DNA of 64,000 nucleotides from Mytilus californianus. Lineage: Eukaryota. Numbering within the stretch: position 1 is the first letter of the stretch; the number at the start of each line of letters is the position of its first letter. Where the stretch lies: assembly GCF_021869535.1 (NCBI RefSeq), contig NW_026262723.1:56668001-56732000 (forward strand), written 5' to 3'. Shown here in pieces: positions 47,593 through 62,600 of this stretch. Both the position numbers and the translations under genes were made by a program. The notes beneath the pieces are model-generated. The model was not told where the DNA came from, made no database searches, and was given only the letters and a program-made list of their open reading frames with translations.

Positions 47593-48016
47593 TATAAGAA
47601 GATGTGGTATGAGTGCCAATGAGACAACTCTCCATCCAAGTCAAAATTTATAAAAGTAAACCATTATAGGTCAAAGTACGGTCTTCATCACGGAGCCTTG
47701 GCTCACACCGAACAGCAAGCTATAAAGGGCCCCAAAAATTACTAGACTGAGTGTAAAACCATTCAAACGGGAAAACCAACGGTCTAATCTATATAAAAAA
47801 CGAGAAACGAGAAACACTTATGAACCACATCAACAAACGACAACTACTGAACATCAGATTCCTGACTTAGGACAGGTGCAAACAATTGCAGCGGATTTAA
47901 ACGTTTTAAAGGTACCAAATCTTCACCCTTATCTGAAACAATAGTTTAACATCACAACATAGAAAGACACACTATAAAATATCAATTGAAATGGCTTAAC
48001 TCAATCAAATAACATA
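47593..48016 (+). mobile_element. Family A repeat, long well-preserved copy
   Basis: High identity to the reverse complement of 59156-59453. Confidence 0.88.
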
Positions 48017-48522: not shown

Positions 48523-50100
48523 TCATGCATTTCGTTTCACCAGCTTATGATAGAGTCCATAAAATGCTACAAAGCATTTAAAGCGATAAAATATCACAAT
48601 TGGAAATAAAACGAAATAACATGTGACCCATACTTGCTTTCCATAAAGAAGAGTTGGAGCATCAGATGCAAATACTATTGTTGAAGAGAGAAATGAGTCC
48701 GTTCCCCAAATAATTAAATTATTCATCGACATGAAAAGACATGCGTATTCAATTGACATACAATTGGACACTGACGAATGTATTCTTTCATAGCTTTTCA
48801 TTTGAAAAATAAAGACAGTTTGCAAGTAAACTCCAAAAATCATTATAACATAGCTGAATAACTTTATGCCATTCGCATTATCGCCGTGAAGCAGTTTTAC
48901 ATAGGCTACAAGTCGCATTGTATAATATACCAACGATCCAACGAAACTAACTAAAATCATGTAATCCTTAGCAACAAATTTGTAATTTTTTTCTCTGGGC
49001 ATGCAATCAGTTTGTATCAGGTAAAAACACCTAAAAAGCACTAGTAATAAAACTGTCATTTCAGCGCTGTTGTAAATATTAAATGTCCTATCTACAGATG
49101 GATTTCCTGGTCCATATATTCGAAGTGAAAATAGAATTATACACGGAGTGTTTATCAGAACTGCAGATGCAATAACTATAAAAGCTAATGTTCTGTCACG
49201 TGGTTTATTTGGTACAAAATTAATTGAAATTTGTCGATTCATATGCTCGTTACTCTCGGAAAATATCAAACTCGTAGTTTCATCTTTATTCATACTATCG
49301 TAAACACATGAATATTTCCTTTCATCGTTATATCTCTTTGGCCATAGCTCAGACACAAATAGAATTGCCAGCAAGGAATATTCTAACACGGCTGGATCCA
49401 TGTAGCTTTCCACACTCTGCATGACATGAACAGTAGTTGAATTGGTTAGGCAAATTAAGGATGAATTGGTAGTACTATTAACGCTATAGTCACGGACATC
49501 TTGTAGTTCGTGAACAAACTCAATAACTATTACCGAAATATTCGCAAGAAACAATATGAGTAAGCCATAATATGATCCAAGATTGTTAACGAACGAACGG
49601 CGCGAAAACTGTGTAAGAAATCCAGTTTGAACAAGTCGGAAGATAAAAAGCAAGCAATCACATACTATGCGCTCTCTTACGTTAAGTAAATCGAAATATC
49701 CTCTAAAGCAGTCAATATGATAAGCTAAATAAATGACACTATAGGTCATAGTTGCTAGTGTGAAAAGCCACAGAAATCTTAGCATGATTCTATGACTTAT
49801 ATCCCAGTCTTCCTTCGGGACTGTAACCTCGGGCTTTATAGATGCATAAATACTGAGGGACACACAAATAACAATTCCTAAACACGTGGTAACAGTCATT
49901 GTTGTTGTAAAAAGACTGTATGTACCATCAGAACATATAACTAAAGTCTCACAGAGAATAACTACAATGCCTACCAAGAAAACCAATCCGGATATGCTTC
50001 CATCATGGGAAATAAACCCGCTGATTTGATATTTACGAGGATGTCCTGCTGAAAACGGCAAGATAAATATAGCTCGTAGAAATCTTCTTAGCGTCAACAT
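48523..50100 (-). CDS. OTOP-like: Otopetrin-like proton channel 1 (525 aa, single coding exon)
   Basis: Multi-TM protein with OTOP motifs LVQTGFL, LANIS, DPAVLEYSLL, YLQTVF, NNLIIW, FPIVIFYRF. Start placed at MLTLRR (50100) by alignment with the paralog N-termini and an acceptor tttttatattacAG at 50116-50115. Confidence 0.9.
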   Translation of the reverse strand: MLTLRRFLRAIFILPFSAGHPRKYQISGFISHDGSISGLVFLVGIVVILCETLVICSDGTYSLFTTTMTVTTCLGIVICVSLSIYASIKPEVTVPKEDWDISHRIMLRFLWLFTLATMTYSVIYLAYHIDCFRGYFDLLNVRERIVCDCLLFIFRLVQTGFLTQFSRRSFVNNLGSYYGLLILFLANISVIVIEFVHELQDVRDYSVNSTTNSSLICLTNSTTVHVMQSVESYMDPAVLEYSLLAILFVSELWPKRYNDERKYSCVYDSMNKDETTSLIFSESNEHMNRQISINFVPNKPRDRTLAFIVIASAVLINTPCIILFSLRIYGPGNPSVDRTFNIYNSAEMTVLLLVLFRCFYLIQTDCMPREKNYKFVAKDYMILVSFVGSLVYYTMRLVAYVKLLHGDNANGIKLFSYVIMIFGVYLQTVFIFQMKSYERIHSSVSNCMSIEYACLFMSMNNLIIWGTDSFLSSTIVFASDAPTLLYGKQVWVTCYFVLFPIVIFYRFKCFVAFYGLYHKLVKRNA

Positions 50101-53920: not shown

Positions 53921-54657
53921 TCAGTACACATCCTACAATTAAATCAAACCACTAAAGTCGACCATCAACACATAGATCGTTACTGTACTAAATAATACAT
54001 TAGATGTTGTATGTGATCGACGAACAAAACTAATGATGAGTATAACAAAACTAATGATGAGTATAACAAAACTGAATAGAAAAGACGATAAAGACGGCGG
54101 GTCAATTAAAGTATTATAATTATAGTAAGTGTTCACGGGTTGTTGTTGATGTAGTGCCATTCTATGTATCTATGCTAATCAATGTTCTTTTTTCTTATAC
54201 ATGTATTCTCTATATGCCCCTTGTGGGTCCTTAATTGGTAATAAAATATGTTCTTGTTCTTCTTGTTATTGTAAAAGTTGTTCTATAGCAAATTACAAGG
54301 TATCAATTATAACCCATTGTTTAAGACCGTATATTGACCTGTAGATGTTTACATTCCTGTCATTTGACCTTTTGATGGACAGTTATTCTGACTGGCGATC
54401 ACACAACAGAGCCTTATAAAGATACAAGACTAGTTTAAACAAGACATAAAAGGGCAGATACTTTACACGGAGGAAGACATGACATTTATATTAACGACTG
54501 ACAAAAAAAAAGACAGCTGCAGTAGTCTAAAATATGTTTTCTTGCAAACAATCTTGCAATGGACCGCTGAAAAAGTAGGTCATTTACTTTTAGATCTCAG
54601 ACGTCCCATGAGACACATTCTACAATTATTTATATCAGGGATAGTATCTCCCGCGCA

Positions 54658-54660
<3 letters not shown>

Positions 54661-54714
<54 letters not shown>
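54661..54714. repeat. (CA)27 microsatellite
   Basis: Seen directly. Confidence 0.97.
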
Positions 54715-55702: not shown

Positions 55703-57298
55703 ATGACTCCTTTTAAAAAACTGTTCAGAGCAATTTTTGTGCTGCCATTTTCTGCTGGAGACCCAAAGAATCAGTATCTAGGTGGAATAGTCACTCATGA
55801 TGGAAGTATTTCTGGTGTAGTGTTTCTTGTTAGTGTAGTTGTTATTCTTTGTGAAATGTTATTGATTGGATCATTTGGTACTGAGAAAGATTCTACGTTT
55901 CTATTTGTGCTAACCATGGAAGTGACCTCTGGTCTGGCTATATTGATTTGCATAATTCTGTTAATCTATGCATCATTGAAACCAGGTATACTCAAAGAAA
56001 ACGATTGCTGGGATGTTAGTAACAAAATCATGATGAAATTTTTATGGCTATTTACCTTTGCTAGTTTGACATATAGTGGTATTTTCATTGCATACCATGC
56101 TGACTGTCTTATAAACAACTACCCACTCGACCATGTCAAAAATCGTATTCTTTGCGACGTTTTTCTCTTCACCTATAGATCAGTCCAAACAGGATTTTTA
56201 ACATACTTTTCGCAACGAGTGTTTGTGAGTAAACTCAGATTCTATTACGGATTACTTGTCTTATTTTTAATTAACATAACAGTTATTGTCATAGATTTTG
56301 CTCACTCGATCCGTGACGTTAAAGACTTCAGTATAAATGACACACAAATCGCAAAACCAAACACATGTGCTAGCAATTCTTCTATTAGCACAATTTTGCG
56401 TAGTGTAAAGAATTTCCTGGAACCCGCTGAGCTTGAATATTCTTTATTGACTATTCTATTTATTACACAGCTATGGCCAAGGAAGAAAACAATTTCTAAC
56501 AACAGCAATCCACTGTGTATAATTCGCGACAGTGTTACTGATGGGGAATATGAACCCTTAGTCTGTGTAAATGAGGATGTAGCAATTTATGATAACATTC
56601 CATGTAGTGCGAATTCCGAAAAACCTAAACGCATGACTATGATATTCGCAAATATTGCATTTCCCGTGCTTATTTCAATACCAAGCACTATTTTACTTAT
56701 TATCAAAATCTACGCTTCAAAAGATGAATTGGTAGAAAACGCATTAAACATCTTTAACGGATTTCAAGTGACAATACTTCTGTTTGTTTTAGTCAAATGT
56801 TATTACTTACTCCAGTCAGACTGCAAACCGACAAAAGTGGAAAGCCATTTTACCTCTAAAGACTATCTTATTCTTGTCAGTTTTGTTGGATCGTTAAGTT
56901 TATACTTAATGAGATTAATCTCATACATTTTACTCGTACATACAGATAATCAAAATCCAACTAAAACATATACTTATGTTATTACGATTATGGGTATTTA
57001 TTTGCAGATAGTTTTCTTATTCCAAATGAAAAACTATGGAAAGGGAAAAATCCAGTCATCATGTATATCAATAGAGTATACTTGCCTGTTTATGTCCGTA
57101 GTCAACTTTATGATCTGGGCGGAAGATTCTTTTATAGCCGCCAGGTGGGTATTTCGCGATGACGCGCCTACGCTTTTCTATGGTAACAATGTGTGGGTGA
57201 CATATTTTACTCTGCTTTTTCCTTTTGTTATATTTTACCGTTTTAAATGTTTTGTTGCATTTTATGGCTTGTATCACAGACTGTCAAATGAAATTTAA
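55703..57298 (+). CDS. OTOP-like: Otopetrin-like proton channel 2 (531 aa, single coding exon)
   Basis: Motifs SVQTGFL, LINIT, LEPAELEYSLL, YLQIVF, VNFMIW, FPFVIFYRF; Cys in YHADC and NTCAS consistent with the extracellular loop disulfide. Confidence 0.92.
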   Translation: MTPFKKLFRAIFVLPFSAGDPKNQYLGGIVTHDGSISGVVFLVSVVVILCEMLLIGSFGTEKDSTFLFVLTMEVTSGLAILICIILLIYASLKPGILKENDCWDVSNKIMMKFLWLFTFASLTYSGIFIAYHADCLINNYPLDHVKNRILCDVFLFTYRSVQTGFLTYFSQRVFVSKLRFYYGLLVLFLINITVIVIDFAHSIRDVKDFSINDTQIAKPNTCASNSSISTILRSVKNFLEPAELEYSLLTILFITQLWPRKKTISNNSNPLCIIRDSVTDGEYEPLVCVNEDVAIYDNIPCSANSEKPKRMTMIFANIAFPVLISIPSTILLIIKIYASKDELVENALNIFNGFQVTILLFVLVKCYYLLQSDCKPTKVESHFTSKDYLILVSFVGSLSLYLMRLISYILLVHTDNQNPTKTYTYVITIMGIYLQIVFLFQMKNYGKGKIQSSCISIEYTCLFMSVVNFMIWAEDSFIAARWVFRDDAPTLFYGNNVWVTYFTLLFPFVIFYRFKCFVAFYGLYHRLSNEI

Positions 57299-57471
57299 AG
57301 TGAAATGAAAACTTTAAGTTAGTTTTGTTACATATAATTTAATTACAAAGTTTAACATGACATAATGAAATAATACGAAGAGGGATGATCAATTTCTGTA
57401 TAATGATCGTCTGTTTGCTGCTGCCATCACTGTCATTTTATTGAAATACTACTTGAGGGAAACACGATCCA

Positions 57472-57477
57472 AATAAA
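57472..57477 (+). terminator. Putative polyadenylation signal AATAAA
   Basis: 174 nt after the stop codon, in the same acgatcc..aataaa context as 62775. Confidence 0.55.
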
Positions 57478-59155
57478 ACAAATATTCACAAGACATTAGA
57501 TGAAAGGAAGATATACGATGAACGCTAATAATTTCCTCCTAATATAGCAAACATACCCACTGCCATTTAATTATGCAATCCTTTGACAAATGGGTCTATT
57601 TTATTGATAACTCTTTATATTGGTTAGTATATTGCATTTGTTTACGTCACTGTGACATTTTATAATTAATACGCTTATTTGATTAAAATAGTTTCTCAAT
57701 TTCAGAATTTGTTTTGTTAGAATTGTGAGCAACTGGCTTACACTTAAAGATATTTGACTCAAATCACATTTGTACGAATATAAAAATAAGGAAATATGGT
57801 ATGATTATGCTCAACTCTATATAAATGGCAATATTTCCAAATGAGCGATTTCGGAACTTTTGCAGTCTTTTCCCGTTTAGTTGTTCACCCAATTTTGTCA
57901 ATAAAACGGAACTATAAATAAGTGTCATATACAAGTGAGTGGTTTAGCTAGCTATAAAACCAGGTTTAATCCACAATTTTCTTTGGAAAATGCCTAAACC
58001 AAGTCAGGAATATAGCAGATGTTTTTCACTTGTTCCGTTGATTGATAGCGTTTGATTTTGTCAGTTTTTATGGACTCCCCCTTTTTGAAAATGCCTTGGA
58101 GTTTGGTATTTTTGTTATCCTTTTTGGATGCGAAAAGTTTGAAGTCTGTTAAAACATCTTAACCTGTATTTGACAGAATAGTGATTCATGAACATGCAAA
58201 TGCTGCTACTATATATATATATATATTGATTTGTGGTGGGTTTTTTTTATTTCTAATTCAAGGTGCAACAATAAATCCGACCATATCATATCTTCTTCTT
58301 TGGAAGAAAGCCCATAAAACTATCGCTTGAATTTAAAGCAAACAAATTAATTTTGTATTGTTAACGAAAAGAAAAGAAAAATGACCGAACCATAATCTAA
58401 AAAAAAGCAAAGACCATTAAACAGACAGCATAGGAATTTTAATACTAGGATCTGATATAATATCACATGAGACAACTGTCATCTAAAATACAAAAAATGA
58501 TTATGTACATGTACAAGTCAAATGACGACCTTTAAGAATGGAAGAAGTCTGATATCGTAACCTAGGCTAGTATATGGGAGGCCTTGTTTTCTATATACAT
58601 GTACCATCATCACATTTATGTATTTCTATACGTGTCTAGATGCGCGTGGTGTATTTACACACTTGGAAAACAAAATGTTTTTAAGATGCCACCACGACGT
58701 CACTCGTACTCCGGTTTTTTCTAAACGTTTTCTTGCCTAATCTGGCCATTTGAAGTTGGTAATCAAAGTAACTCCGGAGCCCAGTATAGATTGTCGAGAG
58801 AAGAAAATATGTTATTAGGAAAGAGTACATTTTTGTAACATAACGTATGCAATTTTGGCTATCTAGAAAAGAGAAGTTCCAGTCATTAAAAAGTATCTGT
58901 GGTTGGAGGGAATGTTTATACAGCTGAATACATTTTACAGTTAAATAATTCGAGTATCATTCTTTTAATTTGGTAGATTCACAATTCAAACTTCCAAAAA
59001 TATGTCGAATGTTACAAATATGCCATTAGAATATGACTCTGTTTGAAAGATGTTTCTAATTCTACTGTTAACCTTAAATAAATTAAATAAATAAATAAAT
59101 TGTTATCAAAAGTAAGTATCAATTGACTAATATTCTGAATAGTATGGCATCCTGA

Positions 59156-59453
59156 CCCAGCTGCATTTGTTTGCACCTGTCCTAAGTCAGGAACCTGATG
59201 TTCAGTGATTGTCGTTTGTTGTTGTGGTTCATAAGTGTTTCTTGTTTCTCGTTTTTTTATATAGATTAGACCGTTGGTTTTCCTGTTTGAATGGTTTTAC
59301 ACTAGTCATATTTGAGGCCCTTTATAGCTTGCTGTTCGGTGTGAGCCAAGGCTCCGTGTTGAAGGCCGTACTTTGACCTATAATGGTTTACTTTCACAAA
59401 TTGTGACTTGGATGGAGAGTTGTCTCATTGGCACTCATACAACCTCTTCTTAT
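59156..59453 (-). mobile_element. Family A repeat copy
   Basis: Reverse-complement match to 47593-47895. Confidence 0.88.
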
Positions 59454-59937
59454 ATCTACCAACTCCCTCTCAGCGCCAGGAAGATCAGGCGTAATACCGT
59501 CCATGTGACCACTTTTCAATGCTGAACAGGACTGATCTACTGCGCATGTGCGTGTTATATAAACAATGAATATACGAAACGTCAACAAACGTTCCTGTAA
59601 TAAAGGTTCTTCAAGTAGACCAGGTTACATCGAGGTTACCCTAATATTCCTTATATTATAAATCTGGTGTTTTACAGTTATACATGTATGTTAATACATA
59701 TCTGAAAACTGACAGTAAACTTGCTTGTACTTCACATGTATGAAAATTCCAGACGAGATACAAAAAAATATTTGAAAAATGAACATTAATTTGCACTGTT
59801 ATTTCTGTATTAAGTGGAGTTTCCTTTGTTTAGGTAAAAAATAAATTAACCAGCCAACAATGACATGATTAAAGTTTCGATTAAGCATTAAGGAAGAAAT
59901 TCATTATTTAACCCATTCAAAAGTTGTCACATATTAA

Positions 59938-59948: not shown

Positions 59949-60383
59949 TACGAATCCAAATATAGTTGAATAATTGATACGATCGTTAATAGTGCATATC
60001 AGTATTAACACTGCCTATATATGTCTATTGGAAAACTGTTTTAAGTCAATACCACCATTTAAAGAAAACATCAGTAAGTAGTCTCTATATTTACTTAATT
60101 TGTATGATAATCTTCACATGAAGTCTGTGTATAGAGTCTGGAATGTGTATCTGATTTTCAATGTAACGAAATTTAAAATCATAAAAGATAAAAGCAGGAA
60201 CTCGTAGATGGGTGGGTGTTTAATACATCACCGGAACATGATCATATTAAAGGTTTCTTTATTATAGAAAACATTCATTTGTTACGGTATCAAACATTTA
60301 TGTAGCGTCTGGTAAGCATGTAATTTTCATTTCTATTAAAACCTGTCAATACGATAATTATGTGACTACTTCGACTACTCGTG

Positions 60384-60855
60384 GCCCCGACATGACAAAA
60401 TGTGAATCAATTCAAACGAGAAAACTAACGGCCTAATTCATACCAAAATAATAGACGAAAAAAAAACATGACAGACATGAACCAAAGATACCCATTGAAT
60501 TACAGGCTCCTTACTTGAGACAAGCACATAAAGAATGTTGCGGGGTTATACATATTTGTGAGTATTCAATCGTCCCCCCTAACCTCGGTAAATGGTGTAA
60601 CAGCACAACAAAAAAACAAAGTATAAAATCAGTTCCAATTGGCTTAACTTAAAAGAACGGAACGAGGATCATAAAAACAATAGACACAAAGCACCGAAAT
60701 AAGAGTATGCGACGTTACTGAAATTAAGTTCAAAGCCAATTAAAACTAATACATATATCATGTTCTCTCAGACTTAGGTATCAATCAGTACACATCCAAC
60801 TGATTTAGTGCAAATACATCATCAACAGTGTGAAAAATGCATGACCTGTATATAA
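60384..60855 (+). mobile_element. Family A repeat (5'-truncated) inside the intron
   Basis: ggccccgacatgacaaaatgtgaatcaattcaaacgagaaaactaacggcct ... aaatgcatgacc; absent from the paralogous intron. Confidence 0.8.
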
Positions 60856-61010: not shown

Positions 61011-62600
61011 ATGACTCCTTTCAAAAGACTGTTCAGAGCTATTTTTGTGCTGCCATTTTCTGCTGGAGACCCAAAGAATCAGTACCTAAATGGAGTAGTC
61101 ACTCATGATGGAAGTGTGTCTGGTGTAGTGTTTCTTGTTAGTGTAGTTGTTATTCTTTGTGAAATATTATTAATTGGATCATTTGGTACAGAGCAGGATT
61201 CTACTTTTCTATTTGTACTAACGATGGAAGTTACCTCTGGCCTTGCTATATTGATTTGCATAATTCTGTTAATTTATGCATCATTGAAACCAGATATACT
61301 AGAGGTAAACGATTGCTGGGATGTTAGTAACAACATTATGATGAGGTTTCTGTGGCTGTTTACTTTAGCTTGTTTGTCATACAGTTGTATTTTCATTGCA
61401 TACCATGTTGACTGTCTTATAAATAACTATCCAATCGACGATATCCAAAATCGTATTCTTTGCGACGTTTTTTTATTCACTTACAGATTAGTCCAAACAG
61501 GATTTTTAACATACTTTTCACAAAGAGTGTTTGTGAGTAAACTCAGATTTTATTACGGATTACTTGTCTTATTTTTAATTAACATAACAGTAATTGTCAT
61601 AGACTTTGCGCACTCGGTCCGTGACGTCAAAGACTTTACCATAAATGCAACACAAATTGCAAAACCAAATACATGTGCAAGCAATTCCTCTATTAGTTCA
61701 ATCTTGCGTAAGGTAGAAGATTTCTTGGAACCCGCTGGACTTGAATATTCTCTATTGACTATTTTATTCATAACACAACTATGGCCGAAGAAGAAAACAA
61801 TTTCTAAAAACAGCAATCCACCGTCTTACATTCGAGATAGTGTAAATGCTGGGGAATATGAACCGTTAGTCTGTAGAAATGAGAACGAATCCATTTATGA
61901 TCAAATTCCAAAAAATACGAATTCCGAAAATCATAAACGGAGGACTTGGATATTTGCAAATATTGCGTTTCCCGTTCTTATTTCAATACCAAGCACTATT
62001 TATCTGATTCTGAAAATCAACGCTTCAAAAGATGAATCAATAGAAAACGGATTAAACATCTTTAACGGATTTCAAGTGACAATACTTTTGTTTGTTTTAG
62101 TCAAATGTTTTTACTTACTCCAGTCGGAATGCAAACCGACCAAAGAGGAAAGCCATTTTACATCTAAAGACTATCTTATTCTTGTCAGTTTTGTTGGATC
62201 GTTAAGTTTATATACAATGAGATTAATTCCATACATATTACTCGTACATACAGATACTCAAAATCCAGCTAAAACATATACTTATGTTATCACGATTATG
62301 GGTATTTATTTTCAAACTGTTTTCCTATTCCAAATGAAAAACTATGGAAAGGGGGAAATCCAGTCATCGTGGATATCAATAGAGTATACTTGCCTGTTTA
62401 TGTCCGTAGTCAACTTTATGATCTGGGCAGAGGATTCATTTATAGCCGCCCAGTGGGTTTTTGCAAATGACGCGCCTACCATTTTCTATGGTAAAATGGT
62501 ATGGGTAACATATTTTACTTTGCTTTTCCCTTTTGTTATTTTTTACCGATTTAAATGTTTCGTGGCATTTTATGGCTTGTATCACAGACTGTCAAACTAA
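61011..62600 (+). CDS. OTOP-like: Otopetrin-like proton channel 3 (529 aa, single coding exon)
   Basis: Close paralog of gene 2 with the same motifs; start placed at MTPFK (61011), matching gene 2 and downstream of the acceptor. Confidence 0.92.
   Translation: MTPFKRLFRAIFVLPFSAGDPKNQYLNGVVTHDGSVSGVVFLVSVVVILCEILLIGSFGTEQDSTFLFVLTMEVTSGLAILICIILLIYASLKPDILEVNDCWDVSNNIMMRFLWLFTLACLSYSCIFIAYHVDCLINNYPIDDIQNRILCDVFLFTYRLVQTGFLTYFSQRVFVSKLRFYYGLLVLFLINITVIVIDFAHSVRDVKDFTINATQIAKPNTCASNSSISSILRKVEDFLEPAGLEYSLLTILFITQLWPKKKTISKNSNPPSYIRDSVNAGEYEPLVCRNENESIYDQIPKNTNSENHKRRTWIFANIAFPVLISIPSTIYLILKINASKDESIENGLNIFNGFQVTILLFVLVKCFYLLQSECKPTKEESHFTSKDYLILVSFVGSLSLYTMRLIPYILLVHTDTQNPAKTYTYVITIMGIYFQTVFLFQMKNYGKGEIQSSWISIEYTCLFMSVVNFMIWAEDSFIAAQWVFANDAPTIFYGKMVWVTYFTLLFPFVIFYRFKCFVAFYGLYHRLSN

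Follow-up and report, generated by a model that had tools for sequence, protein, structure and literature searches.

Three intronless genes at the end of a 64,000-nucleotide stretch of the Mytilus californianus genome (the window) encode divergent otopetrin-like proteins in which the histidine of transmembrane helix 12 (TM12), the proton acceptor of the canonical otopetrins (OTOPs), is replaced by lysine. We propose that they are functional, tandemly placed genes of an otopetrin-domain group that is divergent, lacks introns and expanded specifically in bivalves, that their TM12 relay has been remodelled, and that they probably do not act as acid-activated inward proton channels of the canonical kind, a reading to which we give a probability of roughly 0.6. 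Homology to the otopetrins, the predicted fold, the positional equivalence of the Lys and the His, the clade-wide absence of the His, purifying selection and, for the one gene examined, transcription are established. The proteins were already known as database predictions, under the NCBI labels "uncharacterized" or "OtopLc-like". Literature searches found no publication about otopetrins of bivalves or about a natural loss of the TM12 His.

The three genes are uninterrupted reading frames with FYRFKC close to each 3' end (Table 1), and all use AAA as the Lys codon. The products of genes 2 and 3 are 87% identical, and that of gene 1 is ~50% identical to either. Close relatives are found in Mytilus galloprovincialis and M. 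edulis at 84-94% identity, including an M. edulis protein 91% identical to the gene 1 product and M. galloprovincialis LOC143045015, 94% identical to the gene 3 product. All three products match the Pfam otopetrin domain (PF03189) at 57-65 bits, for a gathering score of 27.8. Because the match spans only model positions ~141-434, the C-terminal two thirds, we consider the three proteins to be divergent members of the family.

Table 1. Coordinates of the three otopetrin-like genes and their landmark residues in the window
Feature	Position	Strand	Description
Gene 1, intronless otopetrin-like CDS	48523..50100	-	525 aa + stop; PF03189 61.8 bits; start at the conserved Met at 50100 (orthologue alignment); mechanical ORF extends to 50292
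Gene 1, Lys codon at the TM12 His site	48577..48579	-	within FYRFKC 48591-48574
Gene 2 (gene of the finding), intronless otopetrin-like CDS	55703..57298	+	531 aa + stop; PF03189 57 bits
Gene 2, TM6 motif PAELEY	56423..56440	+	kink Pro241, proton-carrying Glu245 (56435-56437), triad Tyr246
Gene 2, TM9 Lys386-Asp387	56858..56863	+	acidic residue 1 past the canonical TM9 Asp column (XtOTOP3 D509); homology of the Asp uncertain by 1 residue
Gene 2, TM12 PFVIFYRFKC	57221..57250	+	kink Pro507, Phe511, FYR box, Lys515 (57245-57247); FYRFKC 57233-57250
Gene 2, 3' UTR	57299..57754	+	AATAAA/ATTAAA-type signal at 57682
Gene 3, intronless otopetrin-like CDS	61011..62600	+	529 aa + stop; mechanical ORF from 60957; PF03189 64.6 bits
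Gene 3, Lys codon at the TM12 His site	62553..62555	+	within FYRFKC 62541-62558

The earlier note had read FYRFKC in all three genes and placed its Lys at the conserved TM12 His, and both observations were borne out. Each stretch translates to FYRFKC, and HMMER sets FYRFK on FYRMH (mouse OTOP2, zebrafish Otop1 with H574, Xenopus OTOP3 and chicken Otop3), without a gap in four independent alignments (phmmer; 20-paralogue profile). Moreover, the spacing Pro507-x3-Phe511-x3-Lys515 of the gene 2 product is that of Pro559, Phe563 and His567 in CeOTOP8, which act as helix kink, gating Phe and proton acceptor, respectively (PMC11343839). At the position where canonical OTOPs carry the TM12 His (zfOtop1 H574, mOTOP2 H551, CeOTOP8 H567, XtOTOP3 H669), all three genes encode Lys. 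FYRFKC is shared through common descent and not by chance.

The surrounding machinery is kept. The TM6 Glu (zfOtop1 E267, mOTOP2 E250, CeOTOP8 E325) is represented by Glu245. Since PAELEY of gene 2 aligns with PFNIEY of OTOP1 and OTOP2, the TM6 kink Pro and the proton-carrying Glu, roles attributed to Pro246 and Glu250 in mOTOP2 (PMC11343839), are retained. As the earlier note had claimed, the TM6 Glu and both Gln/Asn/Tyr sets are retained in all three genes (Q162/N191/Y246 and Q435/N468/Y512, with Q435 on XtOTOP3 Q558), and the FYR box described by Hughes et al. 2008 (PMC2268672) stands as F-Y-R in the last helix of each. In TM9, the D509 column of the alignment holds Lys386, followed by Asp387, with a register ambiguity of one residue.

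An AlphaFold2 model of the gene 2 product, built on the 20-paralogue alignment, contains twelve long helices (mean pLDDT 74.8, pTM 0.75). Its top 12 Foldseek matches in the PDB were all OTOP1, OTOP2, OTOP3 or CeOTOP8 chains (probability 1.00, TM-score 0.62-0.83 by target length, 10-16% identity), and the matches that followed were MFS transporters with TM-scores <0.2. A 12-TM double-barrel OTOP-like fold is therefore predicted for this protein. Compared with vertebrate OTOP1, OTOP2 and OTOP3 and C. elegans OTOP8 (PDB 6nf4, 8ug6, 6nf6, 6o84, 8ug4), the window proteins share the Pfam domain, the predicted 12-TM double-barrel fold, the TM6 Pro-x3-Glu, the TM12 Pro-x3-Phe, the FYR box and both Gln/Asn/Tyr triads, but differ from these solved OTOPs by an identity of only 10-16%, by Lys in place of the TM12 His, by a TM9 acidic residue offset by one and preceded by a Lys, and by belonging to an intronless family of at least 24 copies.

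The TM12 His has been called highly or absolutely conserved and needed for function (Saotome et al., bioRxiv 10.1101/542308; Burendei et al.; PMC11343839; PMC6483595). For CeOTOP8, Gan et al. described Glu325 and His567 as "absolutely conserved" and proposed that the proton hops from Glu to His and that a flip of the His then delivers it to the cytosol (PMC11343839). Structural models centre conduction on this Glu-to-His hop, with both residues absolutely conserved (PMC11343839, PMC12549899). In XtOTOP3, the substitutions His669Ala and His669Gln abolish the currents, and His669 hydrogen-bonds Asp509 on TM9 (Chen et al., PMC6483595); the TM9 Asp salt-bridges the protonated His in canonical OTOPs (XtOTOP3 D509, mOTOP2 D369). 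No His-to-Lys mutant at this site is reported in the OTOP structure and function papers cited here.

Searching the complete assembly (1.65 Gb, 175 contigs) in six frames with the Pfam model returned 41 matches of two classes: (i) canonical OTOP genes, multi-exon and matched exon by exon at 172-260 bits (loci L001, L002, L003 and L005), which read F(F/Y/L)(R/F)FHS and thus keep the His, and (ii) intronless paralogues, which number at least 24 frames without interruption (473-592 aa, 36-86 bits). The latter are distributed over four or more contigs, and C143 and C1 carry several tandem arrays of them. Among the 24 intronless paralogues, the TM12 site is occupied by Lys in 12, Glu in 9, Asn in 2 and Gln in 1, and His is found in 0/24. 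In the 20 that were aligned, the TM6 Glu is present in 18/20, the N-barrel Gln in 20/20 and the two triad Asn in 19/20 and 16/20.

Two Lys-type paralogues of this genome, L008 and L007 (G000:C143:100187723-100188700 and 100193062-100194039), lie ~5.3 kb apart and have identical 567-codon frames, which indicates a very recent tandem duplication. Another locus, L028 (G000:C143:79310749-79311606), has with its relatives P0019 and P0042 a Gln at the TM12 site and an Ala for the TM6 Glu, and several triad residues are lost; if any member of the family is genuinely non-conducting, this small subclade is the strongest candidate.

Word-index protein searches, with one protein or with the 20-paralogue profile, gave 8-9 matches, all mytilid. 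An exhaustive profile search of 1.84 billion representatives gave 1433 hits at E <= 1e-3, 149 of them at E <= 1e-30, and the TM12 site was read by HMM-guided alignment of the best 150 of the 1433 hits and 8 earlier ones, 135 of which had the site aligned. Among these 135 nearest representatives, His occupies the site in 47 (35%), followed by Lys (23), Gln (16), Glu (15), Thr (9), Ser (5), Leu (4), Phe (4), Ala (3), Ile (3), Asn (2) and Arg, Met, Tyr and Asp (1 each); ~90% retain the TM6 Glu. Maximum-likelihood analysis of 128 near-full-length rows placed the 21 intronless paralogues fetched from this genome, without exception, in a 50-row clade (starred support, 99) in which none of the rows has His at the TM12 site (residues K/E/N/Q/R/L). 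Within it, the three window genes nest in a 12-row subfamily (starred support, 100) in which Lys is invariant down to ~48% identity. Related bivalve clades carry T/S/A/Q/I/F/L, and at least 33 changes at the site are needed on the 128-row tree; scored as His versus non-His the figure is 11, and as Lys versus non-Lys it is 7.

Among named sequences, the Lys form is confined to Mytilus (M. californianus, M. coruscus, M. galloprovincialis and M. edulis, "proton channel OtopLc-like"); further Lys-type contigs come from runs SRR29726840 and SRR30826388/9. The nearest named non-mussel relatives are oyster OtopLc-like proteins (Crassostrea virginica LOC111133628, C. gigas LOC109619526 and Saccostrea LOC134253668), which resemble the window proteins in length and in the conserved Glu and triads but have the TM12 His (FFRFHS, FYRFHA, FYRFHV). 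The His is lost, as in the intronless sister paralogues of the same genome, in relatives from scallops, pearl oyster and flat oyster, which fall in the same or neighbouring clades: in place of the Lys, the mussel paralogues have Glu, Asn or Gln, the scallops Argopecten and Ylistrum Thr, Ser or Ala, Pinctada imbricata (pearl oyster) Gln and Ostrea edulis (flat oyster) Ile. A beetle sequence, the Callosobruchus maculatus "Otopetrin" (P0151), groups with canonical His-bearing sequences yet has Gln; the loss of the His therefore reaches beyond bivalves.

This survey corrects what the earlier note had claimed for the motif and widens its frame beyond the three genes. FYR(M/F)H was presented there as the otopetrin hallmark; as the TM12 site varies across the bivalve clades, with His in 47/135 representatives, it is a hallmark of the canonical OTOPs only. 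The family-wide alignment that the earlier note had called for found Lys at the site in 23/135 representatives; the solved OTOPs have His. Its proposal of an undescribed otopetrin subclass is right insofar as the clade is divergent and no published description of it was found, but the group is defined neither by the three genes nor by the Lys, since the other residues of the 50-row clade and of the related bivalve clades argue against a Lys-defined subclass. Read from the alignments and the tree, the Lys is the mark of one mytilid subfamily within a bivalve expansion where the putative proton-acceptor site varies freely.

We propose the following consequences for the mechanism. The step that would be missing here is the canonical one, in which the TM12 His accepts the proton from the TM6 Glu and passes it on to the cytosol. 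Lys515, in a cavity facing the cytosol, would normally remain protonated. It would then be a constant positive charge, with Glu245 and/or the acidic residue of TM9 (Asp387) as its partner, and protons would not be passed on at a pH close to neutral. This is why canonical acid-activated inward proton channels appear unlikely. Selection has maintained the remainder of the conduction apparatus, which argues that OTOP-like conformational changes probably persist; the conformational cycle would be retained with a remodelled relay. The outcome could be a channel that conducts but whose pH dependence is strongly shifted, or a protein that does not conduct and serves in sensing or modulation.

A buried Lys can have a strongly lowered pKa and relay protons in other membrane proteins. 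The window genes could then encode working proton channels in which the Lys replaces the His as acceptor, with conduction set for more alkaline conditions or for protons flowing outward, e.g., at the pH of seawater or calcifying fluid. The strict retention under purifying selection of the TM6 Pro and Glu, the TM12 Pro and Phe, the FYR box, the triads and the TM9 acidic residue would fit such channels, as would the invariance of the Lys over the 12-row subfamily and the alkali activation of OTOP1 described in PMC9810603. On the other hand, XtOTOP3 is killed by changing its His to Ala or Gln (PMC6483595), and the Glu, Asn or Gln of the sister paralogues is hard to square with one relay chemistry; taken at face value, these residues suggest that the clade has no single shared one. 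We regard a Lys acting as relay as possible but rather improbable.

A broader proposal is that the OTOP fold works without the relay His altogether, the Lys, Glu, Asn and Gln forms being active channels or transporters whose relay would be retuned in each subfamily, to alkaline seawater, to the pH of the calcifying fluid or to another ion. We consider this proposal rather improbable. If true, it would overturn the obligatory Glu/His bridge and provide a natural mutational series for the site: the clade keeps the Glu, the kinks and the triads and never has the His, whose place is taken by Lys, Glu, Asn and Gln within a single genome and by Thr, Ser, Ala, Ile and Gln in further bivalves. If any protein of the clade conducts protons, the relay model needs revision. 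If none does, the OTOP fold has a second, unknown function, expanded in bivalves, whose biology centres on calcification and the control of pH. In both cases, natural mutants from this clade can serve as test cases for the OTOP mechanism.

Many members without the TM12 His have a His in TM9, beside the canonical Asp column (LSHY, MKHV, etc.). Examples are L010, L014, L020, L027 and L029, with Lys at the TM12 site, and L011 and L012, with Glu, as well as the representatives P0013, P0017, P0018, P0025 and P0031. In the tree set, a TM9 His occurs in 20/91 non-His rows vs 0/37 His rows. After phylogenetic correction, the covariation between TM12 and TM9 (acidic vs His, His vs acidic) was not significant, with only 4-7 independent pairs. 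The distribution hints that the titratable His may have shifted to TM9.

Selection and transcription bear on whether the genes are functional, as our preferred reading of a remodelled relay holds. Between genes 2 and 3, dN is 0.073 and dS 0.339 (dN/dS 0.22), and five further paralogue pairs of the genome have dN/dS of 0.23-0.36; purifying selection thus acts wherever examined (six paralogue pairs). Gene 2, the one gene examined, is transcribed at a low level in these samples. X21 is the only genuine RNA-Seq run and shares its study with X15 and X16, two DNA-like runs in which most of the stretch is contained. Its reads on gene 2 are found solely in the orientation of a plus-strand transcript, over 56573-57754 with the 5' half of the gene uncovered, at a depth of ~1-2 in 6% of the run. 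Contigs of X1 and X2, two small and putatively RNA runs, span 55747-57674, i.e., the ORF and 3' UTR, and are absent from the unique flanks, which DNA-like X15 covers evenly. Transcript reads and contigs halt at about 57674-57754, near the poly(A)-type signal at 57682, and the message is unspliced across the coding region.

Decaying retrocopies, with the His lost through relaxed constraint, would account for intronless genes next to multi-exon canonical OTOPs in the genome, for a TM12 site highly variable across the clade and for low expression. This view is nevertheless largely refuted and now highly improbable, given the 24 uninterrupted frames of 473-592 aa, dN/dS of 0.22-0.36, Mytilus orthologues 84-94% identical, the Glu, Pro kinks and triads among many invariant residues, and a strand-consistent transcript ending near a poly(A) signal. 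An alignment slip, by which the Lys would not be the structural equivalent of the His, could be suspected in proteins only 10-16% identical to the solved OTOPs and with a one-residue ambiguity in TM9, but it is rejected as very improbable on the four independent ungapped HMMER placements, the i, i+4, i+8 spacing of Pro, Phe and Lys shared with CeOTOP8, and the identical register of F(F/Y/L)(R/F)FHS in the canonical OTOPs of the same genome.

The otopetrin-like cluster fills the last 16 kb of the window; positions 1-44000 contain two ORFs of at least 130 aa and no long open frames, and the G+C content of the ORF-poor window is 29-34%. Upstream of gene 2, at ~54630-54700, lies a (CA)n/(TG)n microsatellite, visible in the ORF translations as THTHTH or CVCVCV. 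Between genes 2 and 3, the segments 57755-58148, 59134-59527 and 60316-60512 reach a summed contig depth of ~2.8e4 to 7.9e5 in a DNA-like run, for ~15-30 in the flanks, and attract RNA reads from both strands, many of them loose-ended; they are high-copy interspersed repeats. An ORF fragment akin to these repeats (…RLDRWFS.LNGFTL…) recurs inverted at 47671-47817.
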